A stretch of DNA of 64,000 bases from Raja brachyura (taxonomy: Eukaryota): contig OY740804.1 of assembly GCA_963514005.1 (NCBI GenBank), forward strand, positions 5,518,001 to 5,582,000. Direction: 5' to 3'. The position numbers and the translations under genes were made by a program. Positions 10,820-44,209 of the stretch are shown piece after piece. The notes under the pieces are model-generated. The model had not been told where the DNA came from. It ran no database searches and worked only from the letters and a program-made list of their open reading frames with translations. Each line of letters begins with the position of its first letter. Within the stretch, counting starts at the first letter, position 1.

Positions 10820-10856
10820 CGGGCAGGGAATAAATGAGTAGAATTGGAATCCACAT
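10820..10856 (-). CDS. Receptor A exon 1, leader peptide MWIPILLIYSLP
   Basis: ATG at 10856, 37 nt, donor CCG|GTAAGT, phase 1. Homologous to three other leader exons in the window. Confidence 0.9.
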
Positions 10857-15355: not shown

Positions 15356-15631
15356 CTAAGAAACAACAGAGGCATAAATTGTCTCAGAGTTCTCTGGAGT
15401 CCCAGTAGATTGGGGTTTCCGATTTCCCTTTGGGCAGTTGCGATGAAAATTGACATCTGCATAGACTACAGCATTGTCAGTCACATGGTGCCTTGACCTC
15501 GACTTCCTTTGACAATTCACCACTGCATACGCGAGTTCACCTTCATTGTTATCCAAATGGTCAACTGCCCTGTTGTTTTCAAGTTGCTGCAGATTTGCAT
15601 AAACGTGGTTCCCTTCCAACACAGCCATTTC
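15356..15631 (-). CDS. Receptor B terminal cytoplasmic exon with ITIM/ITSM motifs
   Basis: Acceptor ttttag|GAA, phase 0. Motifs HVYANL, LAYAVV, VVYADV (ITIM-type) and TIYASV (ITSM). Stop at 15356-15358. Confidence 0.92.
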   Translation of the reverse strand, partial: EMAVLEGNHVYANLQQLENNRAVDHLDNNEGELAYAVVNCQRKSRSRHHVTDNAVVYADVNFHRNCPKGNRKPQSTGTPENSETIYASVVS

Positions 15632-16047
15632 CTAAAATATAACAACATTCAATTTTACAACCTAATATATCTGATAGGTCCTCAACAGATGTCTATTGCA
15701 AAATAGGTCTCAAAGTGTTCAGTGTACAGAACAAGCCATTGCTGTTGTTTACAACACAAAGATAGTGTAACACGGTGGAGCAACGATAGAGTTGCTGCTT
15801 AACAGTGCCTGCTACAGGTTTGTAGGTTAATTGGTTGGCATAATAGCAAATTGCCCCTAGTGTGAGCAGGAGAGTTTAGTGTGCGGGGATCACTGGTCGG
15901 CGTGGAGTCGGTGGGCCCAAGATCTTGTTTCTGCAATGGATCTCTTAAATGGTGTGGACTGGTGTTGCTAAATGGTCTGTGTCTACACATATAATTCAAT
16001 ATTATATATTCTTCATCACTCAGATAATTTATATTTCACATTTTTAC

Positions 16048-16094
16048 CTGGATGTCATTGTTCTCTTCACCGTGTGATGTATTGCAATTGGATT
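16048..16094 (-). CDS. Receptor B first cytoplasmic exon (ESNCNTSHGEENNDIQ)
   Basis: 47 nt, phase 1-0, canonical splice sites, links TM to ITIM exon in frame. Confidence 0.87.
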
Positions 16095-18028
16095 CTGGAA
16101 AATATGTTGTCGATAGGGCCATATTAGGAACAGGTTTAAACATCATTCATTCATATATTTCATTCATTTGTTCTATGTACCTTCTATATCTCTCATTTCT
16201 CGTTCCCCTGACTCTCAGTCTGAAGAAGGGGCTCAATTCTAAAAGTTACCCGTTCCTTTTCTGCAGAGATGCACCCTGACCCGCTGAATTGCTGGAGCAT
16301 TTTGTGTTTATCTTCAGTATAAACCACCATCTGCAGTTCCTTCCAATATACTGAAACATCTATGAGTTTTGTGCAAGACCTTATATTTAGGAGAACCCCA
16401 AAAGTACTGCTGTATATTTGGATGAACGGAGCAAAAATCTGCCCTGTTGTTCTGGTTACTGTACATATGTTCAGAATGGATCATATTCCCTGTGCTCTAC
16501 CCATCCCTCCTGAAAGCTGCCTAAACCTACTTGATCTCCCGGGTTTCTCAACCCTTTAACTACCATTCTCATTCCCACACTAACATTATTATCCTGGGCC
16601 TCCTCCGTTGTCAGAATGAGGCCCAGTGCAATTTGGAGGAAGAGCACCTCATATTTCGCTTGGGCAATTACACCCCAGCGGTATGAACATTGACTTCTCT
16701 AACTTCAAGTAGCCCTTGCTTTCCCTCTCTCTCCATTCCCTCCCCATTCCCAGTTCTTTGTCCAGTCTTACTGTCTCCGACTACATTCTATCTGTGTACC
16801 ATCCACTCCCCTGACATCTGTCTGAAAAAGTGTCTTGACTCGAAATGTCACACATTCCTTCTCTCCAGAGATACTGCTTGTTCCACTGAGTTACTCCAGC
16901 ATTTTTGTCTATCGTCCAAAACGTATCTGCTCCAGCAGGTTTTCATAAGTTCAGTAAGTGATAGGAGCAAAATTATGCTATTTGGCCCATCCATCTACTC
17001 ATTCACTCATGGCTGATCTATCTCTCCCTCCTAACCTCTTTCTCCTGCCTTCTCTCCACAATCCAGGACACCTGTACTAATCAAGAATCTAACTATCCAT
17101 CTATGCCATAAAAATATCTATTGACAGCCTCCATAGCATTCTGTGGCGAAACATTCCACAGATTCATCACCCTCTGACAAAATAAATTCTTCCTCATCTC
17201 CATCCTAAAGGAATGTCCTTTAATTCAGAGGTTATGACCTCTGGTCCTGGACAGTCCCACTAGTGGAAACATCCATTCTACATCTACTCTATCCAGGACT
17301 TTCACTATTTGATGTTTCAATGAGGTTCCCCCCTCTTTTCCCTCTTACCCTGTTGTAATGGGTCTTGGATCTGAAATGTTTACTGTTTACTTTCCACTAA
17401 TGCTCTCTGACTGAGAAACAGCTCAGTGAACTTTCACATTTTCATCGGCGATGGAGATAGTTGGCAGCTTCAAGTTCATGGGCGTTCACATCTTGGGTTA
17501 CCTGTCCAGGCTAAACCTGCCCTGCCTCAACTACCTCCTCTGGCAGCTCCTGCCATATACCCACCACCCTCTGTGTGAGGCAGGTATGTTGTACGTTGTC
17601 TATGTCCCTGTGAGGCTGCAGGCGTGATCTTCATTGTAACAGTACTTCACCGTGCTTGTGCATGTGGCAATAAACAAGACTTAACCCGATTCGAAATACA
17701 ACAGCTAATCACACAAAGCATATTCTAACAGCTGAGAGGATGAGAGTATCAATGTAAATCTTACTTCTACCCAGCCTCTTAGTTCTCTACCATGTCTGCC
17801 ATTTCACACTGAGACAGTTTCTGTACAATGATGTTCTAAGAACAGTTTTGTCACCGAATCACCATGATAGCATCAAATATGATAGCATTATTGATCAATT
17901 ATGCTTCCTCCTACATTTATTATTTTAATACAGTGCATTTGTTGATTAGAACAGAATAAAATCTCTTGCATTCTGCAAGTAACTGAGACATATATTGTGA
18001 AATTATTTAAGGGAAATCAGGAACTCAC

Positions 18029-18117
18029 CCTTGGTTTTACGCTTTCGGTACCAACAGAAGGCAATGATGAGAATCAGGAAAAGCACAGTGACACCAGGCG
18101 CAAATATGTAAGTGATC
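18029..18117 (-). CDS. Receptor B transmembrane exon (ITYIFAPGVTVLFLILIIAFCWYRKRKTK), uncharged TM
   Basis: 89 nt, phase 2-1, donor GG|GTGAGT. Not in the ORF track; translated by hand. Confidence 0.9.
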
Positions 18118-18379
18118 CTGTCAGACAGAGAATAGGGAAGGGTGAGACATGGCTCATCATTGATTCTTGGCCTTCAGTAAAGAACAAAAGTCAAGCGTTA
18201 ATATGGCACCTTTCATGATTTTTCTGAAGTGTGCAGCAAAGGAAATGAAGTGTAGAGTCTGTTTCAGTGGATAATGCAACATATAATTGCTCACAGTAAG
18301 GTGACATTGACCAACGATCATGAAACCTGTTGAAGAGCAATTGGGTCCAACCATTAAGGAGCAATGCATGGGAACTGCA

Positions 18380-18752
18380 CGGGAAGATTGCACGGGAAGA
18401 TTGTTCCCGATGTTGGGGGAGTCCAGAACAAGGGGTCACAGTCTAAGGATAAGAGGGAATTCCTTTAGGGCCGAGATGAGGAAAACATTCGTTACACAGA
18501 GAGTGGTGAGTCTCTGGAATTCTCTGCCACAGAAGGTAGTTGAGGCCAGTTCATTGGCTATATTTAAGAGGGCGTTAGATGTGGCACTTGTGGCTAAAGG
18601 GATCAGGGGGTATGGAGAGAAGGCAGGTACGGGATACTGAGTTGGATGATCAGCCATGATCACATTGAATGGCGGTGCAGGCTCGAAGGGCCGAATGGCC
18701 TACTCCTGCACCTATTTTTCTATGTTTCTATGTTTCTATGTTTCTATGTTCT
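18380..18752 (+). mobile_element. CR1 3' fragment
   Basis: RTRGHSL...TQRVVSLWNSLP, 3' UTR, (ttctatgt)n tail. Confidence 0.9.
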
Positions 18753-20273: not shown

Positions 20274-20322
20274 CATGAAGAATCATTGGATCCTTTCGAA
20301 GTTTCACAAGAATATCCATGTC
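20274..20322 (-). CDS. Receptor B stalk exon (GHGYSCETSKGSNDSSW)
   Basis: 49 nt, phase 1-2, acceptor ttccttattccaacag, donor GTAAAC. Bridges C2 to TM in frame. Confidence 0.8.
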
Positions 20323-22125: not shown

Positions 22126-22583
22126 CATTAATTGTAACACAGTGGACCAAAGCTGATAGTGTCTAGGAGTTAACTGTGGCCACATTTACGGATAATTTCT
22201 GTTCACTTCCCATATTTGAGCGTCGGTCATGTGGAGATGATGGAAAGTGAAAGTGCTTGGACTGATGTCACTTCAAACCTAGTTTAAAGCTGTGTAAACA
22301 TAAGAGGAAGTTCTAGGCAGGAAGCTGGCCTACACCAGCACTGGGAAATCTATTTCTGGAGCTCAGCAACCAAGTATGGACAAATAGGCCATAATTCCAC
22401 CATATTAATCTTGATAAGTTAATTAAATAATGTGCATGGATTTCAGGGTGTTGGGGGTTAGGGGGTGAAGAGGGGAAGATAGATCAGCCATGATAGAATG
22501 GTCTATTTCTGCTTTATCACATGATCCTATGAACCACCCCACGCCCACTTCCCCTTCTTCTCCTCATTCCCACCACTACTTAC

Positions 22584-22904
22584 CAGTGCCGTTGATTTTC
22601 ACTAAGAAACTGCAGCGAACATCACTGCTGGAGATGGACACGTTGACCATTTCACTGGATTTTGCTCCATTATTATTTGAGGCTGTGCAATAATATTGAT
22701 GGTGCTGGTGTTTGAAGGATTGACAATGTAGATCCAGGGAATTGTTGTCTGAGATATTTGAATCCACTGATGGGGTCTTTTCATACCAGGTGTAGCTAAT
22801 TGGAAGGGAACCCCTGACCGACTCACAGGACAGGGTCACTGAGCCCACGTGACAGGAGACATTGGCTAGTGACAGAAATCCAAGCACAGGAACAGACACG
22901 GGGT
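22584..22904 (-). CDS. Receptor B membrane-proximal C2-type Ig exon (type b)
   Basis: 321 nt, phase 1-1. SVTLSCESVRGSLPISYTWY...QYYCTASN is an FcR/FCRL/PECAM-like pattern. Confidence 0.92.
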
Positions 22905-23596
22905 CTGTGGAAAGGAGCAAACAATCAGATACTGAGTGAACATTTGATAATCAAACACTCGCCAACAACCACCTTCTGTGTATCTTAGCCAGAGCCGGCA
23001 GGTTGGAATCTGACCCATCCTTCTACGTAGAGTTAGAGTCATCCAGCGTAGAAACAGGCCCTTCGGTCTAAGTTGACCATGCTGACAAATATGCCCTATC
23101 TGCATTAGTTGCACCGGCCCTTGCTTGGCCCCTCTAAACGTACCCTACTCATGTACCTGCCCAAATATTTCTTAAATGTTGCGAAAGTACCTGCCATAGC
23201 TACTTCTGTCGGCAGTACATTTCATATACCTACCAACCTTGTGTAAAAACGTTACTCCCCAGATTCTTAAATCCATCCATAAAACTATGTCCTCAGGTTC
23301 TCGATTCCCCCACTCTGGACTAAAGGCTCTGCATTTACTCGATCAATTCACCGCATGATTTTTGTTTACCTGCCAGAAGATCATCCCTCATCCTCCTGCG
23401 CTCCAAGAAATAAAGTCATCGAACCCTCCCTCAACCCGTCCCTGTAGGTCGGGCCCTCAAGTCATTGCAATATCCTTGTAAGTCTTCTCTGCGCCCTATC
23501 CAACTTGTCAGCATCGTTCCTATAACATGGTGATTAAAACTGACCACAAAACAGACAAATCATCAGACAAATCTTGGATTCTCTTTTACATTTCAG

Positions 23597-23850
23597 GAAT
23601 TACCAGCTGAAAGGGAAGCATTGTTTATGCAACAGTGTTGGATATTCAAAGCAACAAGGAAGCTGCCCATATGTCTAATGAGAATCAAACTGTGTATGGA
23701 GTGCAATTTCAAAGGAAATCGACATGGACACACTCCAGTACAGATGAGGACAAGGTCAGCTACTCAAAGCAACAGCCAAATTGCCCATCAGAAAGCTCCT
23801 TCTCCTCACAATCCATTTACCAGATTTATACATCTCCGTGTCTCTCCATC
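23597..23850 (+). pseudogene. Inverted, frameshifted ITIM-tail exon relic (copy 1)
   Basis: Acceptor ctcttttacatttcag|GAA. IVYATV...NQTVYG.QFQRKS...DEDKVSYS aligns with the receptor B terminal exon. Confidence 0.8.
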
Positions 23851-24162: not shown

Positions 24163-27100
24163 AATAGACAATAGACAATCAACAACAGGTCCATTCGGCC
24201 CTTCAAGCCAGCATCGCCATTCAATGTGATCAAGGCTGACCATTCCCAATCAGTACCTCGTTCCTGCCTTCTCCCCATATCCCCTGACTCCATCAACTTT
24301 AAGAGCCCTATCTACCTCTCTCTTGAAAGTATCCAGAGAACCGGCCTCCACCGCCCACTAAGGCCGAGAATTCCACAATCACAACTCTCTGTGAGAAAAA
24401 GTGTTTCCTCGTTTCCGTTCTAAATGGTTTAGCACATATTCTTAAACTGTGGCCCCTGGTTCTGGACTGCCCCAATATCGGGAACATGTTTCCTGCCTCT
24501 AGTGTGTCCAAACCTTTAACTATTTTATATGTTTCAATAAGAATCCCTCTCATCCTTCTAAGCTCAAGAGTGTACAAGCCCAGCTGCTCCATTCTCTCAG
24601 CACATGGCTGTCCTGCCATCCCGAGAATTAAATTTGTATACGTACACTGCACTCCCCCACTAGCAAGAATGTCCTTCCTCAAATTAGGGAACCAAAACTG
24701 CAGATAATACTCCAGGTACAGTCTCACTAGGGCCCTGTACAACCGCAGAAGGACCCCTTTGCTCCTGTACTCAACCCCTCTTGTTGTAAAGGCCAACATG
24801 CCAATCGCCTTCTTCACTGCCTGTTGTACCTGCATGGTTGCTTTCATAGACTGATGTACAAGGACCCCCAGATCCCATTGTACTTCCCCTTTTCCCAACT
24901 TGACGCCATTTAGATAGTAATCTGCCTTCCTGTTTTTTATACCGAAGTGGATAACCTCACATTTATCCATATTAAACTTCATCTGCCAAGCATCTGCCCA
25001 CTCCCCCAACCTGTCCAAGTCACCCTGCAACGTCATAGCATCCTCCTCACAGTTCACACTGCCACCCAGCTTTGTGTCATCCGCAAATTTGTTAATGTTA
25101 CTTTGAATCCCTTCACCCAAATCATTGATGTATATTGTAAATAGCAGCGGTCCCAGCACTGAGCCTTGCGGTATCACACTTGTCACTGCCTTCCATTCTG
25201 AAAGGGACCCGTTAATCCCTACTCTTTGTTTCCTGTCTGCCAACCAATTTTCTATCCATGTCAACACTCTGCCCCCAATACCATGTGCCCTAATTTTGGC
25301 CCACTAATCCCCTATGTGGGACCTTAACAAATGCATTTTGAAAGTCCAAGTTAACTACATCCATTGGCTCTCCCTTGTCCATTTTCCTAGTTACATCCAC
25401 AAAAAATTTCAGAAGATTAGTCAAGCATGATTTCCCCTTCGTACATCCATGATGACTCGGACCGATCCTGTTACTGCTATCCAAACGTGCGGCTATCTCA
25501 TCTTTTATAATTGACTCCAGCATCTTCCCCACCACCGGTCAGGCTAACTGGTCTATAAATCCCTGTTTTCTCTCTCCCGCCGTCCTTAAAAAAGTGGGAT
25601 AACATTAACTACCCTCCAATCCACAGGAACTGTTCCTGAATTTATAGAACATTGGAAAATGATCACCAATGCATCCACAATTTCTAGAGCCACTTCCTTA
25701 CGTACCCTGGGATGCAGACCATCAGGCCCTGGGGATTTATGAGCCTTCAGTCCCATCAGTGTACCCAACACCATTTCCTGCCTAATGTGAATCTCCTTCA
25801 ATTCCTCCGTCACCCCAGATCCTCTGGCCACTGCTATATCAGAAAGATTGTTTGTGTCCTCCTCAGTGAAGATGGATCCAAAGTAGCTGTTCAACTCACC
25901 TGCCATTTCCTTTTTTCACCTTTTTCAGTCTTCAAAGGTCCAATTTTGGTCTTAACTAATTTTTTCCTCTTCACATACCTAAAAACGCTTTTACTATCCT
26001 CCATTATATTCTTGGCTAGCTTAACTTTGTACCAAATCTTTTCTCCCCGTAGTGTCTTTTGAATTATCTTCTGTTGCTCTTTAAACATTACCCAATACTC
26101 TTGCTTCCCGCTCATCTTTGCTACATTCTCCTTTATTTTTATACTGTCCCTGACGTCCCTTGTCAGCCATGGTCGCCCTTTACTCTCCTTGGAATCTTTC
26201 TTCCTCTTTGGAATGAACTGATCCTGCACCTTCTGTATTATTCCAAGAAATACCTGCTATTGTTGTTCCACTGTCATCCCAGCCAGGGTATCTTTCCAGT
26301 CAACCTTGGCCAGCTCCTCCCGCATGGCTCCATAGTCCCTTTATTCAACTGTAACACTGACACCTCCGATCTACCCTTCTCCCTCTCCAATTGTAGATTA
26401 AGCCTGACCATATTATGGTCACTACCTCCTAATGGCTCTTTAACCTCAAGTTCCTTTATCAAATCCTGTTCATTACATAACACTAAATCCAGAATTGCCT
26501 TCTCCCTGGTAGGCTCCAGTTCAAGCTGCCCTAAGAATCCACCATGAAGGCACTCCACAACCTCCCTTTCTTGGGGTCCAGTACCAACCTGATTTTCCCA
26601 GTCTACTTGCATGTTGAAATCTCCCATAACAACCGTAGCATTACCTTTACTACATGCCAATTTTAACTCATGATTCAACTTGCACCATATACGCAGGCTA
26701 CTGTTTGGTATTTTTAATTAGGGTCTTTTTACCCTTACAATTCCTTAGTTCTATCCATACTGACTCCACATCTCCTGTTTCAATGTCACCCCTTGCAAGG
26801 TACTGAATTTAATTCCTCACCAACAGAGCTACCCCACCCACTCTGCCCACCTGTCTGTCTTTTTGATGGGAGGTATACCCTTGGATATTCAGTTCCCAGC
26901 CCTGGCTCTCTTGCAGCCATGTCCCTGTAATTCGCACAACATCATACTTGCCAATTTCTAACTGAGCCTCAAGCTCGTCCACTTTATTTCTTATACTTCG
27001 CGCATTTATATACAACACTTTCACCTCCGTATTCACCACCCCTCTTGCAGCGCTCGCAATTGGCCCTGACCCTATTGTTATATTCCGTCTCGAACTTTCC

Positions 27101-28392
27101 TTCCCAATAATTCGAGAATCTTTTGTAATTTTTCCTGTCCTCACTTCCCCTTCAACTCCATCCATATACTCCCAATTTGCCAATCCCTCCCCCCCACTAT
27201 TTAGTTTAATCCTACATGTGTAGCCCTAGCAAACCGGCCTGCCAGTACGTCGGTCCCCCTCCAGTTAAGGTGTAATCCGTCCCTTTTGTGCAGGTTACCC
27301 CTACCCAAGAAGAGATCCCAGTAGTTTATCAATCTAAATCCTTGTTCCCTGCACCAGGCCCTCAGCCACACATTCAGGTCCACGATCTCCCTGTTAGAGT
27401 CCTCACTAGCACGAGGTAATGGAAGCAATCCAGAGATAACTACCCTAGAAGTCCTGCTTTTCAGTCTTCTTCCTAACTCTCTGAACTCACTTTGGAGAAC
27501 CTCCTTCCTCTTCTTCCCGATGTCGTTTGTGCCTACATGCACAACTACTGCTGGCTGTTCACCTTCTCTCTATCTCTATCTCATCTCTAAGAGTGGAGCC
27601 ACCAATGTGTCTGTCGCTTGGACTGGAAGCATCGTCTCCCCCGATAGTTCCCAAGAGAGCGTACCTGTTTTCATTAGGCACAGCCACCTGGGTATCCTGC
27701 ACTCCACGGTTACCACCTTTTCTCTCAGTCACACACCTTTGTTCTTCCCGTATCCTCGGCATGACAACCTCACTGTAGGTCCCGTCCAGGAAACTCTCGT
27801 TTTCCCGGATGGCCCTGATGTCATCCAGCTGCTTCTCCAGTGCCCCAACACGATCCTTCAGGAGCTGAACCTGAACACACTTGCCACAATTGTAGCAGCC
27901 AGAGGCTCCATCCGTGTCCTTGGGCTCTCACAAACATCACCCTGCCTCATCTTACCCGTCATGTGTTCACCGCGCCCCGTCCTCTCCAGCTTCTTGCGTA
28001 GCCTCCTCTCCTCAGCCTCCTCGAAGACACTTGAGCCAAAGACTCACACTTTACTCACAAGGCCGCTCCCTCACTGCCACTCCCCGAGAGCAGCCTTGCT
28101 TATATTGACTGATAAATTGCCTAATTTGCCAATTTACAAACTAAATTCCTCAGATTTAAACATTTTTTTCCCTGTGACTGACACTTTTCCCACGGGCTTC
28201 AGTCAATAAGCTCTTCTCCCTGCTTCTCTTGATTACTGGTTCTCCAAGATCCACATAAGCTCTGAGCTAACACTGGATTTTTGGCAGTCCTTTTAAGCTG
28301 TTTTTCCCCTCTGCTTCAACTTTCCCACAGGTTTCAGCCAATAAGCTCTTCTCCCTGCTCCTCTTGATTGCTGCTTCTCCAAGCACTGGGCT
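24163..28392 (-). mobile_element. Older near-full-length CR1 LINE in the receptor B V-C2 intron
   Basis: Fragmented esterase ORF1 (HVGTND, DGLH) and APE-RT ORF2 (NARS, GDFN, FADD). (aatagac)n tail. Empty site in the paralog near 39086. Confidence 0.93.
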
Positions 28393-28606: not shown

Positions 28607-28924
28607 CTTCGGATACTTGGAGATGTACTTTAAATGTTGGTTTGCCAGGTGTAGTAATTCCACAACTGTACCATCCTGTATCTCCAGAGTGAAGATCCTC
28701 CACAGTCACAGTAAATATTCCTCGCGCCAAGTTATCTGTTATTGACACTCTTCCGCTCGGTCCATATTTCCCATTTGTTTCCACTACATGTGTACACTGG
28801 GGACTTGTCCCAGCGCACCAGTATTTTGTGTCTGAGCGGTAAACTGCTGCATAGTGACAATCGATTGTGATCGTTCTTCCCACAACCCCGCTTACTTCGC
28901 TCTCAGCCCACAGTGCACCTGAAA
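28607..28924 (-). CDS. Receptor B V-set Ig exon (V2 type)
   Basis: 318 nt, phase 1-1. IDCHY, KYWC-x6-C, DTGWYSC. Donor AAG|GTAAGT. Confidence 0.93.
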
Positions 28925-29572
28925 CTGAAAGAAACATCTTTCATAAATTGGTGCAAAATTAGCCTTTCACAGACATATACATTAGCGTATACATCAATGT
29001 GTATAGGGGAGTCCACCCAATGATTTTCTTAACTCTGTTGAATTCCACCTAGATTGCGATGAGAGACAGATACTGTACACCGTCCCTCACCACCTGCACA
29101 GTTCGTTCCAAAGCGCTTCCCAGCCAATGTGGGTGTGAATGGTGAAGAATGATGCAATGAACACGGAGCCTGTTGCATTTGGAAGGCGCTGTCTAGGAAG
29201 TCTTGGTGAGTTGCTGCAGTGCATTGTGGAGATGGTGCAAAGTGCTGCTGCACCAGCGGGGGAGGTTGAGGATGGGGTGTCTATCAAGCGCGATTCTGGG
29301 TCATGACAGACCAAGCACAAGTGTTCAGTTAAACTGTGGCCCAGACCAGTGCTTCTTAAACTGATGAATGGTTCATCCAAGGGTGAATGAAATTATTTTG
29401 GGTTGAATGAGTTAATTTATGTTTTTTGCTCATGTGACAAAATAAATTAAATATAAAATTATACACAAGGGAGAATAAGACGAAAATTACCAAAAAAACA
29501 TAAGAACATGTACTCAAGGGTGAATTAAATGTTGTGATAAAGACTCAAGGGTGAATGACACTGAAATTGTTT

Positions 29573-30260: not shown

Positions 30261-30263
30261 CAA

Positions 30264-30720
30264 CAGGCACGTGCCGTCAGGGTAGGCAAGGTAGGCACTG
30301 CCTACCCTGACTAAAATTATGAAATGGCAATTATTAAATATAAATAGTAAAGGCATGGGAGAATTATGCCTATCTAAGAGATCAATCTCCTAGGTAGACA
30401 TAATTCTCCGTGCCTTTCATCTGCAGCACTTGTAACATGTGAAGGTCTGTGCAGCCCACCTGCCGTCAGCGCTGCCTGAGCCATCAGTTTCAAGGGGAGC
30501 AGAAGGCAGCAGAAATTTGCAGCACAGCGCATGCGCAGCATCATACTGCGCATTCGCAGCGTGAGTTTCTTGGCGGGATTTTCAAATATGGATTGCCATT
30601 ATTTTAATAGTATCTCAGGAAACAAAAAGTGAAGAATGGACTTATGGTACCAATAACGTGGTAAGTGCATTTCTTGGCGCTTAATTTTTATAAATACTGT
30701 ATTTCCCGGGGTGGGGGAGA
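30264..30720. mobile_element. DNA transposon terminus, hAT-like
   Basis: Starts CAGGCACGTG with the subterminal hairpin gtcagggtaggca...tgcctaccctgac. No second end found. Confidence 0.45.
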
Positions 30721-31099
30721 GCTCCGTTCACAGTGTTTGGGGAGTCTGGCATTGTGAAGGGGGGGATTGGGGCCAATAACCCACTTGCCACGCTCCGGTC
30801 TGAGTGCAGGTAAATGGGACTAGGTGAGAGTAAGTGTTCGGCACAGACTGAAAGGGCCGAGATGGCCTGTTTCCATGCTGTAATTGCTGTATGGTTTTAT
30901 TGTGGCCGGGGAGTGAATTAGCTTGGGTGGCTGCCGCAGCACTCTGCGCACGAACGGCAGAACTGGCCACCACTTCCGAGGAAGGAAGCAGCTTGGGTGA
31001 CTGACTTTGAGCGGCCACCGGGACTCGACAGCAGAACCGGCTGCCACTTCAGCCCCTTCTGCTGGTCCCCACTCACCTCTGGCAGTGCTCTCCGTCTGA

Positions 31100-32230
31100 A
31101 CATCTCTCAACTGCCGTACTTGGAATGTGTGTGAAGCTCTTATGCTTCTTCGCCAATGGGCTCCTGTTGCAAGCCTATCTCTAGCCAAATTAACCATGAA
31201 TGTGGTCATGCTTATGGCGTTGGTTTTAGCCCAGCGTGTGCAAACATTGCAAAAGCTTCGGCTAGACAGAATGCATGTGTCGGCAGATGCCATTATATTT
31301 TATGTCTATGATTTGCTTAAACTTAGTAGGATAGGCATGACAGGATGTAAGATTGTGTTTTCAGCATACCCCACAGATGATCGCCTGTGTGTAGTTTCAC
31401 ATTTATCTTGTTACATTGAGGCTACCAGAGTCATATGAGGAACAGAGTCTGCATTATTTATTAGCCTAAAAAAACCACACAGTAAGGTGTCGGTGCAAAC
31501 AATCTCAAGGTGGCTAAAGCAGGTTCTGGGAATTGCTGGGATTGCTACTGATAAATTCAAATCTCATTCCACCAGTGCGGCATCAATTTCCGCGGCAAGG
31601 GCGATGGACGTACCGATAGACCATATCCTCGCGGCCGCAGGATGGTCCAGTGCGCTGACCTTTCAAAGGTTTTTATCACAAGCCGATTTCAAGGCTGGGG
31701 GTGTTTGCTGATTCTGTTTTGAGTTCTGTTACAGTTTCCCCCTGAGTTAGAGGGGTTTGTTATGGTTTCGTTAGTAAATAAACTGTTATTCATTTAACAA
31801 ATGTTATTATTGATGCATTATTAATTGTTAACGACTTTTGAGTCAATCGATGCAGTGTGAACGCCGGGTTTGGGTCTGCGGCTGAAATCACAGTGCTTTG
31901 AAGTCTTCACGTAGTCATTCGTGACTCCGAAATAAAATAGTAAGATTAAATGTGAATTTACCAGTTTGAAGTTTGATCTTTATTTTATGAGGAGTTGCAA
32001 TGAGGGATTAGTGCCCTCTGCTCCCAGCCCTCATTGATCTCATCTGGTAGTTCTAGTCTTTGTTATCTTACCATTATACTTCAGTCATTGTTACCAGTGA
32101 GTTCACTCCGCTGCTTTGAAGATTGACGCACCAACGGCTGTACGGGGTTCTTCACATAGTTCCTCATCGCAACTCCTCATAAAATAAAGATCCAACTTCA
32201 AACTGGTAAGTTCTCGTTTAATCTTACTAT
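31100..32230 (+). mobile_element. DIRS-like tyrosine-recombinase retroelement, 3' portion
   Basis: Decayed recombinase: AQRVQTL, ISRWLK, KSHSTS(R)AAS, AAGWSS..TFQRF. Inverted pair at about 31935-32005 and 32160-32230. Confidence 0.85.
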
Positions 32231-32960
32231 TATACTGCATCTGCCATGCATTTGCCCACTCACTCAACCAATCCAAGTAACCCTGCTGCCTCCTAACATC
32301 CTCCTCACAGCGAACACTGCCCCCCAGCTTCGTGTCATACGCAACCTTTGAGAAGGACTGGCCTTGGCTGCGCTTGGTCTCGCTGTTGTAAACCATTCAC
32401 ACTCTCTTCATCACTTCCAATCTGAACATCTCCACACCTACTGGGAGTTTGATAAAGTAAGGGTTATACATGATGGAGTGACGGTCAAGGAGATTCCACT
32501 TTAATTTTGTGAGATTACTGGAATTCCAGTGATTCACACAAATTAACAGAGTTAAAATCATGAACATTATCATGAAATTGTACGTCCTTAGTTATAAATG
32601 TTCATGGATCCAAATAGAATGCATTTGGTGCTTTCTCTGTCTCAAATTGACTGTGAGACCTTAAGCGGCATCCAGAAAATCATATTTAAGGCAGAATGCG
32701 GAAATTTGATGGAATGCACACAACCCGTTGTGATAAGTGCAGTTTGTTCTCTCCTTTCGAAGCTCAACACCTCCCAGGTGAATTATTTGCCAGTCCCCAA
32801 ACAAACTCTCGCAATTTACGCCATGTGCTCATGGTGGCTGCAAAGATGCAGCCTGCAAATACTTAGAAACCCATGAACATCACCACAAGTTGAAAAGCAG
32901 CTGCTCCAAGAACACGAGAGGAATTGTGAAACAGTATTCCCACGGGAAAATAACACTCAC

Positions 32961-33281
32961 CTGTATTGTTGATTTCTGTCACATAACTGCACGTTCCTGC
33001 TCCTTTGAAGACTTTCACGTTGAGTATTTCACTGGGTTTTGTCCCACCATTATTTGAGGCTGTGCAGAAATATTGATTTATTTGACCTCCGAGGATTTCA
33101 CAACTCAGATCCAGTTGATTGCCAGAGGAGATCTGTGACCACCCATACTTGTTCTTCTCACACCATGTGTAATGGATGGGAAGGGATCCACGGACAGACT
33201 CACACGACACTGACACTGAGCCTCCGAGACGTGAGGCATTTGCTGGTGACAGAAATCTGAGCACAGGAGCAGACATGGGTT
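32961..33281 (-). CDS. Receptor B distal C2-type Ig exon (type a)
   Basis: 321 nt, phase 1-1, open frame. SVSCESVRGSLPIHYTWC...QYFCTASN. Donor CAG|GTGAGT. Confidence 0.88.
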
Positions 33282-33859
33282 CTATAGGAATGGAACAAAC
33301 TTTAAGTCACCTGCATGAACAGTTAAAACCCAAACACATGCTAAATCTCAGCAACCCTTTATCTCAGCCCGAACCGTCCGGTTGATATCTCACCGGCTCA
33401 TCTACATCTCTGTGAGTGTGCGAAACCCAGAAACCGAAGAAGGTTAGAGTTATAGAGAACCGAAAGAGGCCCATCACAACAGCTCATTCATGGCGACATT
33501 TCCATATGTCCACGTTTCTCCCTTATCACTCGCAATGATCCCAATCTATGCAACTGTCCAAAATGTATTTTAAATGCTGTTATTCTAACTGCCTCTTCAA
33601 CTTCCTCTGGCAGCAGGTTCCATACACATATCACCCAATGTGTGGAGAATGTTGTCCCTCAGAACAGAAGATGGGATGTTATGTGTCAGTTGTACATATG
33701 TTATTGAGGTCGAACTTGGGCGAATTGTGTTCAGCTTCGGCCACTCATCTGTACAAAACATGCCATTACAGTAAATTACACCGAACTACTCCCCCCTCTT
33801 TAAACAATTCCCATTACGTCTGTTCTCCACTTTCCCATCCCACACAGCTGAAGGCAAGG

Positions 33860-34570: not shown

Positions 34571-35264
34571 TGCTTACCACCGGGGAAATGTCCGGGTGGA
34601 GAGGCTGGCTGCCTGCCAGGCGGTGGGTGGACAGTGGCCGCTGGGGGTGGGGGCGTATTAACGGGACAGAGGGGGAGAGAGAGAGAGCGCGCGGGACTGA
34701 CTGATGCATGAGCTGTGGGTGGGAAACGGGCTGGCCTGCCCCGGGAGGACTGAACGTAGAAGAAGGGTCTCGACCCGAAACGTCGCGTATCTCCTTCGCT
34801 CCTTAGATACTGCTGCACCCGCTGAGTTTCTCCAGTTTTTTGTGCAACCCTCGATTCTCCAGCATCTGCAGTTCCTTCTTGTAACACTGTAGTCTGTTGA
34901 GCTCTGGGGACTGATGCCCTGTTTATTATTCTACGGGTATTCAGACCGCGAGCAAAACTTATATCTCATTGTCGGATTATTAGTTTGAGTGGGAATGCAA
35001 ACCTCTGACAGGGTGACATTTCATACAGTTCAGAGGCAGGGAAATGTGCTGAGCGTCGCACTTGAAGTGGGTGGCCGCTCAGTGGGACAGAGCCCGCACT
35101 GGGTGAGAGCAACATGAGTGGGGTTTCCCGACCCCCGCCCGCTCCCCGCAGGTCTCTGCACTGCTGCGGAGCCGCGGGATATCGGTGCTGCCCTGACCCT
35201 TCCCGGAGAAAACATGGATCAGGCGTTTCAGTGGAGACGTCAAGTCAATCGCTGCGAAACGTAC

Positions 35265-35313
35265 CGTCAGATACTTGGAGATGTACAGAAAATATTGGAT
35301 GGTCGGCAGATGT
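35265..35313 (-). pseudogene. Remnant 3' end of receptor B first V exon (TSADHPIFSVHLQVSD); acceptor and most of the exon deleted
   Basis: Matches the 3' end and donor of the V exon at 62159. At 35314 it jumps to sequence matching the paralogous intron near 43615. Confidence 0.88.
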
Positions 35314-35740
35314 GACTTTACCTTACACTAAACGTTTCCTTTTCGTGTATCTATGCACTGTATGAGGATCGATTGTAATCATGTGTAGTCTTTATGCTGC
35401 TGGTTAGCACGCAACCAAAAAGCGTGTTGCTGCAACTGGGTCCACGTGACAATAAACTATGCTGAACTGGGAGCCAAATGTCCCGCTGCTCATCGGGGAC
35501 AGTTTCTATTCTCAATTTGAACTATCATCATGATTCAATTAGACCACGTGTCAACAGTGGTTAAACTACGAATATAGTCTAGATAATCAAATGTGATTTC
35601 AGATCCATCAACATAACGCACTGGCTTTCATTTCTCCCATTACATGTCTACACATAACTAACCATCTCTGCTGTGGAAAGGGTGCACGGAACCCCAACTA
35701 ACATTGATCATTGGACTATCAACATCTGGTTTTCACTCAC

Positions 35741-35777
35741 CGGGCAGCGAGGAGATGAGAAGAATGGGAAACCACAT
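35741..35777 (-). CDS. Receptor B leader exon MWFPILLISSLP
   Basis: 37 nt, ATG at 35777, donor CCG|GTGAGT. Confidence 0.85.
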
Positions 35778-36164
35778 TGTTTTATCCATAGTTACAAGGC
35801 CAGCACTTGTCTGCCTGTCACTCATCTTTGAGCTCTCAGATACAACCGCATCTCTCAATTAGCAATGAGAAAGAAAGGAACAGGAGGTCAGATCGTGAAC
35901 CACAGCGAGCCAGCAGCAGCTCGACACGTTTTAGTGTGAAAGGCTCAGGGTTATATTTCGCAAATGGTTGGGTCAGATGATCACAGAATCACACAGCACG
36001 GAAACAGGCCCTTCTCCCCGACTCGTTAGACCAATATGCTCATCTAAGTTAGTCAAATTTGTCCACGTTCGACCCATATCTCCACAAACCTTCCCTATCA
36101 ATGAACCCGTCCAAGTGCCCATTACATGTCGTTATTGCATCTGCTTCAACCACTTCGTCAAGTC

Positions 36165-36632
36165 TGATGGCGGGACTGTCATATGCTGAGAGAATGGAGC
36201 AGCTGGGCTTGTACACTCTGGAGTTTTGAAGGATGAGAGGGGATCTCATTGAAACATATAAGATTGTTAAGGGTTTGGGCACGCTGGAGGCAGCAAACAT
36301 GTTCCCGAAGTCGGGGGAGTCCAGAACCAGGGGCCACAGTTTAAGAATAAGGAGTAAACCATTCAGAACGGAGACGAGGATATACTTTTTCTCACAGAGA
36401 GTGGTGAGTCTGTGGAATTCTCTGCAGGGCGGTGGAGGTAGGTTGTCTGGATGCTTTCAAGAGAGAGCTAGATAGGGCTCTTAAAATAGTGGAGTCAGGG
36501 GATATGGGGAGAAGGCAGGAACGGGGTACTGATTGGGGATTGGGGATGATCAGCCATGATCACATTGAATGGCGGTGCTGGCTCGAAGGGCCAAATTGAC
36601 TACTCCTGCACCTATTGTCTATTGTCTATAGT
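36165..36632 (+). mobile_element. CR1 3' fragment inserted about 390 bp upstream of the receptor B ATG
   Basis: RGDLIETYKI...RTRGHSL, (ctattgt)n tail. Absent at the paralogous sites near 44625 and 63293. Confidence 0.9.
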
Positions 36633-37689
36633 CTATCCGTAAGGATGGAGCGGCGGTTATCTCTGGAGTCGGCGACTGTAAACACTGAATGCATTTTTAA
36701 TGCATTTCGTTGTCTCTGTACTGTACACTGACAATGACAATTAAAATTGAATCTGAATCTGAATCTGAATCTGAACAGTGGTAGACAAAAAAAATGCAGG
36801 AGCAACTCTGCGGGCCAGGCAGCTCCTCTGGAGAAAGTGGATAGGTGACGTTTCGGGTCGGGACCCCTCGTGTAATCAATGATACTTTGGATAAAATATA
36901 ATATTTAGAAGAGTAGAAACGTCTAAGCTGTGTACACATCCGGTCATTCCCTCTTGATGATTTTGTAAATGGACCGCAGATCAAAAATGTAATCATTGGA
37001 ACTTTTGTTTTGGTATATTACTGTTGACAAGGGGCAAAACAGGAAGCTGGTGTTAGGAAGTAGGGGCTTTTCACCTGAAACCAGCTGAGGTTAATTGGAG
37101 TATTACACTCTCCTCTATGCTTCAACTCATTAATTCAAACTTTGAAACACTATTGTCGTGATATTCACATTTTGAAATTAACAATAAATGTTGCAGTGGA
37201 CTGTGAAGAAGTATGTCTAGAATTACCACAGGGTGGAGATCAGCTGGGAAAGCGGGAGGTGAAATGTAACTGACGTGTGTAATGTTACTTAAACAAGGGC
37301 AAAGTGATACACTTAGTGAAGTTAAAGCAAGGTAGAATATGCACGGTGAATTGAATTGTTAACTTTGAATAATATTGAATTGTTAATATTGCCATACAGA
37401 GTTAATAAATTAGCAGAGTTGTGTTCATGTACATTCTATTGGTTGATTTTGTACATCTGCTTGCATCGATTTCATTCTGTAGACAACTAGTTGCATTATA
37501 TTATAACCTAATATCTGCTGCTGGCTATCGTTCTGCATGTGTAACTCTCAGGGGAACAGTGCAGTTGAACATATTAGATTAAAGTAAATTGCAAGCCAAA
37601 ACCCACCACTAAAAACAACAGTAGCATCGACCTGAAATGTCACCCATTCTTTCCCTCCAGTGATGCTGCCCGTCCCGCTGAGTTGCATT

Positions 37690-37920
37690 TACTGGATTTT
37701 GTCTAATAATATTGATGATGTTCGCGTTTGAAGGAATGACAATGTAGATCCAAGGCATAGTTGTCTGAGACCTTTGTGTCCACAGGTGGGTTATTTTCAT
37801 ACCAGGTGTGGTTAATGGGAAGGGATCCCCGGAAAGACTCACAGGACACAGTCACTGAGCCCCCGAGACAGGAGACATTGGCTGGTGACAGAAATCCAAG
37901 CACAGAAACAGACAGGGGTT
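37690..37920 (-). pseudogene. Receptor C inactivated C2 (type b) exon
   Basis: Acceptor AG changed to AA. A deletion removes the F-strand Cys, giving QYY-stop. The 3' part is replaced by a repeat. Confidence 0.88.
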
Positions 37921-38496
37921 TTACGGGAAAGGAGCAGATAGTCAGGCACTGAGTGAACATCTGAAAAAGGGACACTTCATCTTCCACCTCATCTGTATCT
38001 CAGCCTCAGGCGCCAGGTTGGAATCTTTCATATGGTCACAGAGCCATATAGCGTAGAAACTGGCCCTTCCCCCCAAATTTCCCGCGCTGACCAACACACC
38101 CAATCGACACTCGTCTTACCAGCCCGTGCTTGGCTCATAACCATCTAAACCTATACTATTCATGTTCTTGTCCAAACGTTTCAGAAACGTTGCGATTTTA
38201 CCGGCCTCAACTACCTCCGTCAGTAGCTCATATACCAAGCACCCATTGTGTAAAAAAAGTTACTCCCCAGGATCTTGTTACATCATTACCCCCTCAACTT
38301 AAAACAATGTCCTCTGGTTCTCGATTCACCTACTCCAGGCAAAAGGCTGTGTGCATTGACTTGATTTATTCCTCGTATGATTGTATACACTTCTATAAGA
38401 TCACCACTCACTATCTTTCCTATAACATGTTGACTAAAACTGATCACAAATCAGACAAATCATGAGATAAACCTTGGTTTCTCTTTTATATGTCAG

Positions 38497-38765
38497 GAAT
38501 TGCCTGCAGGAAAAGGAACATTGGTTATGCAACACTGTCGGACATTCTAAGCAACAAGGAAGCTGCCCATTTGTCTTATCAAAATCAAACTGTGTATGCA
38601 GCAGTGCAATTATGAAGGAAATCGACAGGGACACTCCAGTACAGATGAGGACAATGTCAGCTACTCGGATGTTACATTTCAAAGTGACAGTCAAATTGCC
38701 CGTCAGAAAGCTCCTTCTCCTCACAATCCATTTACCAGATTTACACTTCTCTGGGTCTCTCCATC
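38497..38765 (+). pseudogene. Inverted, decayed ITIM-tail exon relic (copy 2)
   Basis: IGYATL...QTVYAAVQL*RKS...DNVSYSDVTF, with a stop and frameshifts. Paralogous to copy 1. Confidence 0.8.
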
Positions 38766-39300
38766 CTCCCAGCTGCCAGCACTACCATGTCTGCCACTGT
38801 ACCAGTACACAGCAGCACCATCTCTCCTTGTTTTACAATGCCAGCATCTGCAGTTAATCATCTTTTAATCTGAAATTTTGCCACAATCTACAATGCCAAC
38901 ATTCAAACACCTCATTAGTGCAACAGTATCACTATCAACAACTTTTTAATTTCCTTGTATAAAATTGTTGATGGTGATACTGTTGCACTAATGAGGTGAA
39001 CGATTGGTGGTATTGTAGAATGGTGTGTCGGGAGAGAATGGGAAAGTGGAATAACATAGAACTAGTGTGACTGGTGATCGCTAGTCGGTGTGGACTCCAT
39101 GGGCCGAAGAATCCGTTTCCATGTTGCATTTGTAAACTACAACCAAATATCCGGGTGAACCTTTTCTGTAACCTCTCCAAACCTTTCACATCTTTTGATT
39201 TATAAAGCGGCGCCTAGAACGGTGCACCAGACTCCCACCTAACAAATGTTTTGTGCGGACACCAAAGTGGAGACATAAAGTATCTAATTGAGAAAGCTAC

Positions 39301-39618
39301 CTTCAGATACTTGGAGATGTACTTTAAATGTTGGTTCGCCAGGTGCAGTAATTCCACAACGGTACCATCCTGTATCACCAGAGTGAAGATCCTCCACGGT
39401 CACAGTAAATATTCCTCTTGCCGGGTTATCTGTGATTGACACTCCTCCGCTCTCTCCATGTTTCCCATTTGTTTCCACTACATGTGTACACTGGCGACTT
39501 GTCCCAGGGCACCAGTATTTTGTGTGTGAGTGGTACACTGCTGCATAGTGACAATCGATTGCGATCGCTCTTCCCACAACCCCGCTTACTTCGCTCTCTG
39601 CCCACAGTGCACCTGAAA
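39301..39618 (-). CDS. Receptor C second V exon (V2 type)
   Basis: 318 nt, open, close paralog of 28607-28924. Donor weakened to AAG|GTAGCT. Confidence 0.82.
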
Positions 39619-40649
39619 CTGAAGGAAAATTCTTTCATAAATTGAAGAGCAAAATTAGCCTTTCACAAACATATACATTATAGTGTACATCAATGTGTAC
39701 AGGGGAGTCTGCCCAATCATTTACTTAACTCTATTGAATTCTCGTAGATTGCGATGAGAGACAGATACTGCACACCGTCCCTCACCAACTGCACAGGACG
39801 TTCCAAAGCACTTCCCAGCCAATGAATGGTGAAGATGGACACGGAGCCTTTTGCAATTGGAAGGCGCTGTCCAGGGAGTCTTGGTGAGTTGCTGCAGTGC
39901 ATCGTGCAGATGGTGCAAAGTGCTGCTGCTCTGCATCAGCTGAGAAGGTTGAGGATGCGGTGTCTATCAAGCGCTATTCTGGATCAAGACGAACCAAGCG
40001 CAAGTGTTCAGCGAAACTGTGGCCTAGGCTTTGCTTGGCCTTGCTGGTCTAAACCATTCACACTCTCTTCTGGACTTCCCCCCTGACCATCTCCACAGCT
40101 ACTGAGAGCTACATTTCAAAACTCACTTTGACAAAAGTAAGGGTTATAATTTATGTAGTGACGGCCAATTCACTTTAATTTTGTGACATTACTGGAGTTC
40201 CTTCACAGATTCACACAAATGAACACGTTTTTAACCCTGTCATGATCATGAAATTGTTGATCCTTGGTTATAAATGATGATGGATCCAAATAGAATGCAT
40301 TTGGTGCTTTCTCTGTCTCAAAGTGACTGTGAGATCTTAAGAGGAAGCCAGAAAATGAGTGTTATGGCAGAAGGCATACATTTGGTGGAATGCACTCCAC
40401 CTGTTGTGATAAGTGCAGGTCTTTCTCTCCTTTCGAAGCTCAACACCTCACAGGTGAAAGCAACAGGCAATTATTTTCCAGTCCTCCAAGTAAACTATCG
40501 CATTTTACACCATGGGCTCGCGGTGACTGCAATGATGCCGTCTGCAAATACCAAGAAAGCCATGAACATCACCACAAGGTGAAAAACAGCAGCTAGAAGG
40601 ACTGGGGAGGAATTGTGAAACAGTATTCCCACGGGCAGATAACACTCAC

Positions 40650-40970
40650 CTGCATTGTTCATTTCTGTCACATAACTGCACGTTCCTGCTCCTTTTAAAA
40701 CTTTCACGTTGAGTATTTCACTGGGTTTTGTCCCACCATTATTTGACGCTGTGCAGTAATATTGACGGTTTTGACCTCCGAGGATTTCACAACTCAGATC
40801 CAGTTGATTGCCCGAGGAGATCTGTGACCACCCATACTTGTTCTTCTCACACCATGTGTAGTGGATGGGAAGGGATCCACGGACAGACTCACACGACACT
40901 GACACTGAGCCTCCGAGACGTGAGGCATTTGCTGGTGACAGATATCTGAGCACAGGAGCAGACACGGGTT
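40650..40970 (-). CDS. Receptor C C2 exon (type a)
   Basis: 321 nt, open, phase 1-1, close paralog of 32961-33281. Confidence 0.88.
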
Positions 40971-42656
40971 CTGTGGGAATGGAGCAAACATTCAGTCACC
41001 TGTATGAACAGTTCAAAACCAAACACATGCTAAATCTCAGCAGCCCTTTATCTCAGCCCGAACCGTCCGGTTGATATCTCACCGGCTCATCTACATCTCT
41101 GTGAGTGTGCGAAGCCCAGAAACTGAAGAAGGTTAGCGTTACAGAGAACCCAGTGGCATTAGAGTTATAGAGAACAACATGTGTTTCTAGGCAGTAGCCA
41201 TATGTCCACGGTTCTCCCTTATCACTCGCAATAATCCCAATCTACGTAAATGTCCAAAATGTATTTTAAATGCTGTTATTCTGACTGCCTCAACAACCTC
41301 CTCTGGCAGCAGGTTCTATACAAATATCACCCAATGTGTGGAGAATGTTGTCCCTCAGAACAGAAGATGGGATGTTATCTTTCAGTTGTACATATGTTGT
41401 TGAGGTCGAACGTTGGCGAATTATGTTCAGCTTCAGCAACTCATCTATACAAAACATGCCATTACGGTCAATGGCACCTTATTATTCCACCCTCTTTAAA
41501 TATCTCCCTTCACCCATGTTCTCTACTTTCACATCCCACACATCGTGGGAAAATGAACATGCTTGTCGTGATTGATATATTTCTATAAGTTTCTCGCCGA
41601 ATCATTTCCACACCAAGGAATGACGTCTGAGTTTTTCCAATCGCTCCCTGCGTCAATCAAATCCTGTCCAGGCAACGTCGCCCTAAAACCTCTCTGCACG
41701 CTGTCCTCTTCAACTGCACTTTTCGTGAAGCTGAGGGATTAAAGCGGAACACAATTCCCAGAATGTGGAATCAACATCTGCACGTCTGAAGCAGATCATC
41801 TCAAATTATGTTCTGAATGTTCTCACTGATGAAGACCAGCGTGCCAAAAAACATGTTGAATGCCTTGGAATTCTAAGACGAAGGGAAGGTGACAACGAGG
41901 CATGCAAGCAAACCTCTGCCTCACCCGAAAAGACTGTTGGAGTCCTTATGCGGAGCGGACGGGGGAGGTATAGGGACAGATGTTGCATCTGCTGCAGTTG
42001 CAGGGGAAGGTACATGGGGACGGGGTGTTTTGGGTGGGAAAGGACGAGTTGATCAGAGAGTTGCAGAGGGAACGGTCTCTTCGGAAAGCAGAAAGCTGCG
42101 ATGGAAAGATGTGGCTAGTTGGGGCATCCCGATGGAAGTGGCGAAAACGTCGAGGATGATGCGCTGTGAGCGACGGCTGATGGGGCGAAAGATGAGTTTA
42201 TTCTGCTTACCACCAGGGATATGCCCGGTGGGGAGACCTGTTGACTGCCGGCGGTGGGTGGACAATGGCTGCTGGGGGTGGGGGCGCATTGACGGGGCAG
42301 AGGGAGAGAGAGAGAGCGCGGGGTGGGGAGGAAGTGACTGATGCCTGAGCTGGGGGCGGGAAGCGGGCTGGCCTGCCCCGGGAGGACTTAACGCAGTCTG
42401 CTGAGTTCTGAGGACTGATTCCATGTTTAATGTCCTCTGGGTATTCGGACCACGAGGAACACTTGTTTCTCACTGATCTGTTCCTGTCGGATTATTAGTT
42501 TGAGTGGGAATGGAAATCTCTGACAGGGTGACAATTTTTTTTACAGTTCAGAGACAGGGAGATGTGCTGAGCATTCCACTTGATGTGACACTTCCCGGAT
42601 AAAACATGGAACAGGCATTTCAGTGGAGACATCAAGTCAATCGCTGCGAAACGTAC

Positions 42657-42977
42657 CGTCAGATACTTGCAGATTGAGTTTAATCATTGGATCCCAGCCA
42701 GATTTATAAATTCCACAGCTGTACCGCCCTGCATCTCCAGAGCGAAGATCCACCACAGTCACAGTAAATATTCCTCGTGCCGGGTTATCTGTGATTGACA
42801 CTCTTCCATTCCGTCCGTATTGCCTATTTGTTTCCACTAAAACGCTACACAGGTCAGTCCGCACACGGCACCAGTATTTTGTGTGTGAGTGGTACTCTGC
42901 TGCATAGTGACAATCGATTGTGATCGCTCTTCCCACAACTCCTCTTACATCCTTCTCTCCCCACACTGCACCTGAAA
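42657..42977 (-). CDS. Receptor C first V exon (V1 type)
   Basis: 321 nt, open. IDCHY, KYWC-x6-C, DAGRYSCGIYKSGWDPM. Confidence 0.92.
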
Positions 42978-44172
42978 CTGAGGGGATAAACTTTCAGATG
43001 GAGTGCAAAAGAACTGTTTAATGGAAATAGATACATTTTGAAGATTACCAAGAAAAAAATAATTAAATCGTTCCATGATGTGTCATATTACTTCCCGGCC
43101 AATGTATCAGGTCTGAAGTGCAGGCAGTGCTGTTATTGCACCAGTTGTGTCAGTGTTCTGTCCCCGGGTCCGTACAATTAGGGTTCAATTCCCACTCCAG
43201 TTCCCTCAGCAGAAATTGGGCTGGGATCGCAGTGCGGTACTGAGGGAGCGCGTCAGTTTTGCAGGAGCTGCCTTTCAACAATCCCAGGCGGTGCCCGGCC
43301 TCTCACCCTACAGAAATACCCCACTTTGCTATTTCATTGGCGGTGCCGCCGGCTGCGCTGCCAACATTCATCTCTCAAACGACACTGGGCCGGACCCGTG
43401 TTTAGACATTCACTGCCTTTACAACGCCCAGACTGAGGACAGAGGACGGACGGGTTACAATAAAGCGGGTCCTTCACTGGAGAGTGTTACTAGCGTGAAA
43501 ACGCACACCGCCAGATTCAGGGACAGTTTCATCCCAGGTGTAATCAGGCATCTGAATCATCATATCTTCTACTTCTCTGATGATCCTCGGACTACCCTTG
43601 ATCGGACTTTGCTGGCTTTACCTTACACTAAACGTTATTTCCATTTCATGTATTTATGCACTGTAAGAGGATCGATAACAATCACGGATTGTCTTTTTGC
43701 TGGCGAGTTAGCTCGCTACAAAAACAAACTGTTCACTCTACCTCGGTACACGTGGCAATAAACTAAACTGAATTTGGAACACGCTGCTCATCTTGGACAT
43801 GTTCTATTCCCAATGACCCCGGCTCACCTTGGACCTTTCAGCGCGACTGGGCCGCGGATTGGAGAGAGAATGGAGAGAGCGTTGGGAGTGGGTGGATAGA
43901 GCGAGGACAGTGGTTCAGTTTCAGACTCCAGGGAATGGATGGTTTTACGACAGAGTTGAGTTGGACAACTGCAGGGAATATTTGAACTGACACAATGAGT
44001 CCACAAGAGTCTCGATATGCAAATATGATTTCAGATCCATCTCCACAATGCACTGAGTTCCATCTCCCCCATTACACGTCTACACATACTTAACCATCTC
44101 TACTGTGGAAAGGGTGCACGGGACCCCAACTAACATTGATCATTGGAATATCTAGATCTGGCTTTCACTCAC

Positions 44173-44209
44173 CGGGCAGCGAGGAGATGAGAAGAATGGG
44201 GATCCACAT
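44173..44209 (-). CDS. Receptor C leader exon MWIPILLISSLP
   Basis: 37 nt, ATG at 44209, donor CCG|GTGAGT. Confidence 0.9.

Follow-up and report, generated by a model that had tools for sequence, protein, structure and literature searches.

The MDIRs, or modular domain immune-type receptors, are a multigene family of skates and relatives of CD300, TREM and pIgR, and the similarity between MDIRs, CD300 and pIgR is stated in PMC3031540. Two cDNA-derived proteins of the clearnose skate serve as named references: MDIR3 (Rostroraja eglanteria, P0166), with the order V-V-C2a-V2-C2b-transmembrane (TM) region-immunoreceptor tyrosine-based inhibitory motif (ITIM), and MDIR5 (P0186), with the order V-C2a-V2-C2b. 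The original study of the family is said to have described MDIR cDNAs with one to six domains. In conjoined genes of vertebrates, a transcript from an upstream gene is spliced to a downstream neighbor on the same strand, and usually both partners are complete. Here we examined 64,000 nucleotides of Raja brachyura (contig OY740804.1 of GenBank assembly GCA_963514005.1, positions 5,518,001 to 5,582,000 of the forward strand; hereafter the window), in which two neighboring receptor units, B and C, would each supply what the other lacks. Both are incomplete units of a skate MDIR cluster. The best single reading of the arrangement is that C is read through into B to make one six-domain inhibitory receptor, which we propose tentatively and rate somewhat short of an even chance.

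Four receptor units, A to D, lie within the window, all on the minus strand. Their ectodomains are built from V-type and C2/I-type immunoglobulin (Ig) modules with one exon each, as in MDIRs. In Pfam the V exons match V-set, and the C2 exons match Ig_2, Ig_3 or Ig_C17orf99. The V exons show the CD300/pIgR pattern DCxY...YWC...DxGxYxC, and their relatives are listed by NCBI as ‘pIgR-like’. CD300, however, has one V domain and pIgR five V-like domains with no interleaved C2, and the V/C2 alternation seen here is found in neither. We therefore rejected identity with the polymeric immunoglobulin receptor, a name that is a mere annotation label of NCBI. Exon by exon, identity to the named proteins MDIR3 and MDIR5 is 77–90%, and the best database match of any exon here reaches 93%. 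Only elasmobranch proteins, MDIR3 and MDIR5 among them, were returned when the full library was searched with the B C2a exon and when its best six-domain match, P0002, was used in a word search; the matches to P0002 included none from the window's own genome. The window mixes inhibitory, activating-type and anchorless forms, a feature of MDIR clusters. The family and its six-domain form were thus already known; the locus adds another member, and its interest lies in a possible mechanism.

Unit C is an anchorless head of the form leader-V1-C2a-V2. The coding part of its leader (MWIPILLISSLP plus one base, phase 1) runs from the ATG at 44209 to base 44173, where the donor GTGAGT follows, and MDIR proteins of Leucoraja, Amblyraja and Rostroraja have leaders 100% identical to it. 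It is followed by V1 (42657..42977), a V-set exon that is open and of phase 1 on both sides with the donor GTACGT, by C2a (40650..40970), a C2/I-type Ig exon that is open and of phase 1 with the donor GTGAGT, and by V2 (39301..39618), again V-set, open and of phase 1, with the weak donor AAG/GTAGCT. Reading on into the intron after V2 gives GSFLN and then a stop. The fourth Ig exon, C2b (about 37930–37685), is dead: its acceptor has changed from CACAG to CGTAA, the codon for the F-strand Cys is TAG, 22 bp are deleted, and the 3′ end and donor are gone. The C2b exons of B and D can be aligned to it no farther than 37705, and from 37566 on the match is to the gene-upstream region; unit C thus ends inside its fourth Ig exon. 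A tblastn search with full-length relatives found no stalk, TM or tail for C. Together with the dead C2b, this bears out the initial annotation, which had C without its last C2 domain, stalk, TM and tail. The leader, V1, C2a and V2 carry no mark of a pseudogene, being open with their splice sites present; only C2b is dead. Read through its donor, C2a of C stays open for 51 more codons (40495–40650, minus strand) with a hydrophobic stretch, VLLAAVFHLVVMFMAFLVFADGIIAV, where the frame of B stops sooner; this is probably chance.

Unit B is an MDIR3-type inhibitory body, C2a-V2-C2b-stalk-TM followed by ITIMs and an immunoreceptor tyrosine-based switch motif (ITSM), minus the outermost V domain. 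Its leader exon has the ATG at 35777, the last base at 35741 and the donor GTGAGT, and extends over 35741..35851 when a candidate acceptor is included. Loss of the first V exon had been claimed before, and indeed only a stump of the last 49 nt of V1 remains (35265..35313), which keeps the donor GTACGT but has no acceptor. Relative to C (43613–42700) and D, the loss is a deletion of ~0.9 kb. The three remaining Ig exons are all open and of phase 1: C2a (32961..33281), the proposed fusion acceptor; V2 (28607..28924), with the consensus donor GTAAGT; and C2b (22584..22904). The 3′ part of the gene was located with P0002 as a guide. It comprises a stalk exon (GHGYSCETSKGSNDSS.., 20274..20322; phase 1 in, phase 2 out) that matches GLEYSCETSKRPNNPSW of P0002, a TM exon (ITYIFAPGVTVLFLILIIAFCWYRKRKTK, 18029..18117; phase 2 to 1) without a charged residue in the membrane span, a small cytoplasmic exon of 47 nt (ESNCNTSHGEENNDIQ, 16048..16094; phase 1 in, phase 0 out) and a tail exon (15356..15631) that ends in a stop codon. 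The tail displays LAYAVV and VVYADV (ITIM), TIYASV (ITSM) and HVYANL.

The uncharged TM and the ITIM tail homologous to that of MDIR3 place B in the inhibitory class of MDIRs. Identity between B and MDIR3 is 86% in the TM, 77% in the tail and 89% in V2, and the B tail is 82% identical to that of Leucoraja P0169. The two share V/C2 modules, stalk, uncharged TM and ITIM/ITSM tail. They differ in that MDIR3 holds its V-V-C2a-V2-C2b series in a single cDNA, whereas B is without the outer V and the only V1 stands in the neighbor C. The introns of B carry additional sequence: a long interspersed nuclear element (LINE) with endonuclease and reverse-transcriptase open reading frames sits at 24191–28390 inside the V2-C2b intron, where C has none, and extra insertions at 29344–32359 lengthen the C2a-V2 intron.

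Joining C V2 at 39301 to B C2a at 33281, 6,020 bases apart, produces the codon G+AA and keeps the frame, all Ig exons being of phase 1. Read by phase, the exons of C and then of B give the order L-V1-C2a-V2-C2a-V2-C2b-stalk-TM-ITIM, where L is the leader. The initial annotation had based the fusion on surviving Ig exons that are all open and of phase 1 and on a 39301-to-33281 junction that is in frame and yields six domains in V/C2 alternation. Both statements hold, and its features lie at or within a few bases of the positions given, on the minus strand. In the fusion, an mRNA would start at the C promoter and read through into B, and splicing of C V2 to B C2a would then create a six-Ig inhibitory receptor. 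An alternative route would run via the B leader exon and add 37 residues. B's own promoter probably also yields a short form made of B alone.

The proposed architecture, complete with cytoplasmic exon and ITIM tail (L-V1-C2a-V2-C2a-V2-C2b-stalk-TM-cytoplasmic exon-ITIM tail), is annotated in other skates. It is found in P0002 from Rhinoraja longicauda (XP_078277138.1, 809 aa) and in P0153 from Leucoraja erinacea (isoform X1, 803 aa). P0002 combines the six Ig domains V1-C2a-V2-C2a-V2-C2b with an MDIR3-type tail, as C and B would when joined, and its two C2a copies pair as sisters, like the two in this window. P0153, named polymeric immunoglobulin receptor-like X1, has exactly the proposed order, and the V1 of C groups with its V1. 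Among 88 elasmobranch relatives, VCVC is the commonest architecture (30) and VCVCVC the second (15), and several VCVCVC proteins of skates, rays and sharks have a TM and ITIM-like motifs. The CVC order, to which B alone would correspond, occurs among these 88 only in a TRIM fusion and in a model with a doubtful N-terminus. Over residues 1–334 (L-V1-C2a-V2), isoform X2 (P0169, 593 aa) is identical to P0153, and after residue 334 the C2b, stalk, cytoplasmic exon and tail of the two isoforms are distinct copies; thus one Leucoraja head is annotated as joined to two tandem bodies. Both are predicted models, and their first unit keeps a complete C2b, stalk, TM and tail (used in X2), whereas C has none of these.

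The exons of C look selected rather than decayed, as judged from their sequence. C has no stops and no indels in 987 coding nt. The B-C divergence is 4.4% in C2a and 7.2% in V2, with no indel, compared with 12.9% divergence and 8.5 indel events per kb in the non-exon B-C alignments (4.1 kb). In neutral simulations over C's half of the divergence, ~6% kept the 987 nt stop-free and 1.5–6% were frameshift-free, with a joint value of roughly 0.001–0.004. Conserved residues are retained in C at 20/20 positions in V1, 26/26 in C2a and 19/20 in V2. As means over 19 outgroup domains, the lineage-specific amino-acid changes in C and B number 1.7 versus 4.4 for C2a and 4.4 versus 5.8 for V2. The B and C copies pair as sisters in the C2a tree (99/97), C on a branch of 0.012 and B on one of 0.085. 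The initial annotation had also called for the ratio of non-synonymous to synonymous substitution rates (dN/dS) on the C exons; it is 1.4 for C V1 against D V1, a value that fits a fast-evolving outer domain and is uninformative on decay.

Several observations weigh against the fusion, and they are best considered with the explanations that compete with it. Tandem paralogs at 85–95% identity are prone to misassembly, so the B/C arrangement could be an artefact of a tandem array. We rejected this explanation as very improbable because both rearrangement points, the deletion of V1 at 35315 and the place where C C2b meets the region upstream of B (37336–37684 and 37657–37816), are spanned with 0–2 differences by contigs of two independent studies. 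These contigs come from four runs mapped on 35150–41100, where the B paralog, >95% identical, can map onto C exons; flat depth across introns and exons identifies them as DNA contigs. B and C could instead both be decaying relics of birth-and-death evolution, their open exons owed to gene conversion from intact paralogs or to the short time elapsed, which we regard as unlikely. C is truncated within C2b, B has no V1 and C has a degraded V2 donor, and the cluster abounds in inserted repeats and rearranged units. Like a conversion tract, the stretch of high B-C identity at C2a continues for ~400 bp into the intron upstream, and the V2 exons, at 92.8% identity, are little above their flanks. Gene conversion, and not selection, may explain part of the conservation of the C exons, and because the high-identity tract enters the intron, the comparison of exon and intron divergence is only partly usable as proof of selection. 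Nevertheless, B and C have eleven coding exons left, every one of them open, and their splice sites are intact except for one weak donor. The neutral expectation given above is small for C alone, and the C lineage is slower than B at the protein level. Moreover, the three lesions in about 250 nt of the unusable C2b exon show that decay is visible in C where selection is absent.

The other alternative takes B and C as two independent genes: C would encode a secreted V-C2-V protein, with the V2 donor left unspliced, the stop after GSFLN used and polyadenylation downstream, and B a short C2-V-C2 inhibitory receptor. We consider it rather unlikely. The constraint on the C exons is explained equally well by a secreted product, and anchorless Leucoraja models (the second half of P0003, and P0206), VCV forms in rays and soluble relatives in carp (PMC3031540) provide parallels. 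The promoter and leader of B are intact. A TATA-like box, AAATATAA, common to B, C and D, lies ~170 nt upstream of the B ATG, the 250 nt 5′ of this ATG have a mean column identity of 92% with C and D, and the box, 5′ untranslated region (5′UTR), ATG and donor of B are as well conserved as those of C and D. The stop in C comes five codons into the intron, and the V2 donor before it is weak, as the initial annotation had cautioned. Its sequence, G/GTAGCT, differs from the consensus donor of B at +4 and +5, which is unexpected if the splice is selected. With a rough donor weight matrix, it scored about 2 bits versus about 8 for B V2. The V1 donors of C and D (ACG/GTACGT), which presumably work, score only about 3 bits; by this measure the C V2 donor appears weak yet not disqualifying. 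Four AATAAA/ATTAAA hexamers lie between 39301 and 35851, at 38950, 38869, 38370 and 36701. The first three could serve a separate C transcript, but the count is compatible with chance, hexamers being no commoner than expected in these 3.5 kb.

The route of a read-through transcript is a further difficulty for the fusion. A candidate pyrimidine-rich acceptor of phase 1 lies at 35851, ahead of C2a, and the frame from it stays open as far as the donor after 35741, so the clean six-domain product is only one possible outcome. Through this acceptor, read-through RNA from C may include the 37-residue DAVVSESSKMSDRQTSAGLVTMDKTMWFPILLISSLP between V2 and C2a. In the Amblyraja models P0164 and P0165, an upstream C2b exon, within which these models start, is spliced into the equivalent leader exon. 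NCBI models of such clusters often merge neighbors (P0003, P0004, P0005, P0152, P0154), and the annotated six-domain precedents may themselves be artefacts of this kind. A sequencing-run search with the 8.1 kb from B C2a to C C2a yielded six runs, none recorded as RNA, at a threshold of one-twentieth of the words that could miss weak RNA. A word search with the B C2a exon alone gave no match in a database without short transcript-derived fragments for Raja brachyura. On the other hand, two independent genes would leave B as a C2-first receptor, of which no clean example is annotated among the 88 relatives, and its signal peptide would be without the usual VSGA end, which normally comes from the V exon. 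We favor the fusion because C itself lacks an anchor and a tail, the frames fit, the architecture is annotated elsewhere and the C exons are not decaying, and because B alone has no clean counterpart.

Two further features were noted. A conserved pyrimidine tract followed by AG is present in the 5′UTR of all three leaders (35851 in B, about 44283 in C, and D). The equivalent leader site is read or spliced through from the upstream unit in Amblyraja and Leucoraja models, and the translation of B there is in frame with the leader. In addition, 36145–36740 is taken up by a very high-copy repeat akin to the ends of the LINE copies at 18402–18747, 24191–24631 and 29573–30050; all four DNA runs show a summed contig depth of about 2 million there.

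The initial annotation explained the arrangement as gene elongation by duplication followed by read-through. This scenario fits the geometry of the duplication; that the read-through and the splice take place is what we infer. The region upstream of B (36770..37566, minus strand) is homologous to 44679–45459 upstream of C and 63344–64000 upstream of D and marks the end of the duplicated unit. The collinear blocks fit a partial tandem duplication of a segment comprising upstream region, leader, V1, C2a, V2 and part of C2b, placed before a complete unit, and a subsequent loss of V1 in B. Of the two breakpoints, one would fall within the exon for C2b and the second some 1.8 kb upstream of a leader. 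Deletion of the 3′ half of C would give an equal picture. The C2a copies of this genome form a sister pair in the C2a tree, and so do those of each Rhinoraja protein, but not those of Leucoraja P0153; doubling or homogenization of C2a therefore occurred more than once.

The introns record other rearrangements. An inverted fossil of an ITIM-tail exon is present on the plus strand in the V2-C2b introns of B (23611–23815) and C (38365–38769) and its presence in both dates it to before the B/C duplication. Its homolog is the tail (..SQIARQKAPSPHNP..) of the single-V unit that ends Rhinoraja P0154, and the copy in C has stops. The intron before C2b in unit D is chimeric: 59990–60150 resembles the V1-C2a intron of B (33683–33845), and 59445–59999 resembles the V2-C2b intron of B (22522–23075). 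Thus a single intron-to-intron recombination that removed C2a and V2 separates D (V-C2b) from the four-domain form, a direct example of module loss or gain.

The outer units of the window differ from B and C. D consists of a V exon (62473–62160), a C2b-type exon (59827–59508), an MDIR5-like TM (SYISWRVERWLFFLLLVIWSISTAVFTRGSK, 56672–56779) and an MDIR5-like short tail (QRRDESEPRHSSPELQ, 56011–56058), all on the minus strand, and its anchor and tail are without an ITIM. An array of 80-bp tandem repeats, whose copies are about 95% identical, lies at 53543–54543. Unit A, also on the minus strand, has a leader near 10856 (about 10821–10856), a single V exon (6523–6182), a stalk (4901–4716), a TM (2222–2067) and a cytoplasmic piece (706–548). 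It looks like a single-V receptor and resembles the last unit of P0154.

Should the join prove unreal, the locus would be an ordinary part of a receptor cluster under birth-and-death evolution, and then also a warning for annotation, since neighboring units here are easily merged by gene predictors and readers alike. If the join is real, the window would provide a base-resolution view of domain gain through partial tandem duplication, read-through and loss of ill-fitting exons, and it would explain how an anchorless gene fragment stays under selection. We put forward, as a rather doubtful proposal, that the anchorless C fragment has been kept by selection through splicing onto the damaged B, which would make this a receptor gene seen midway through elongation, and that six-domain MDIRs may have arisen repeatedly in skates by the joining of tandem units.

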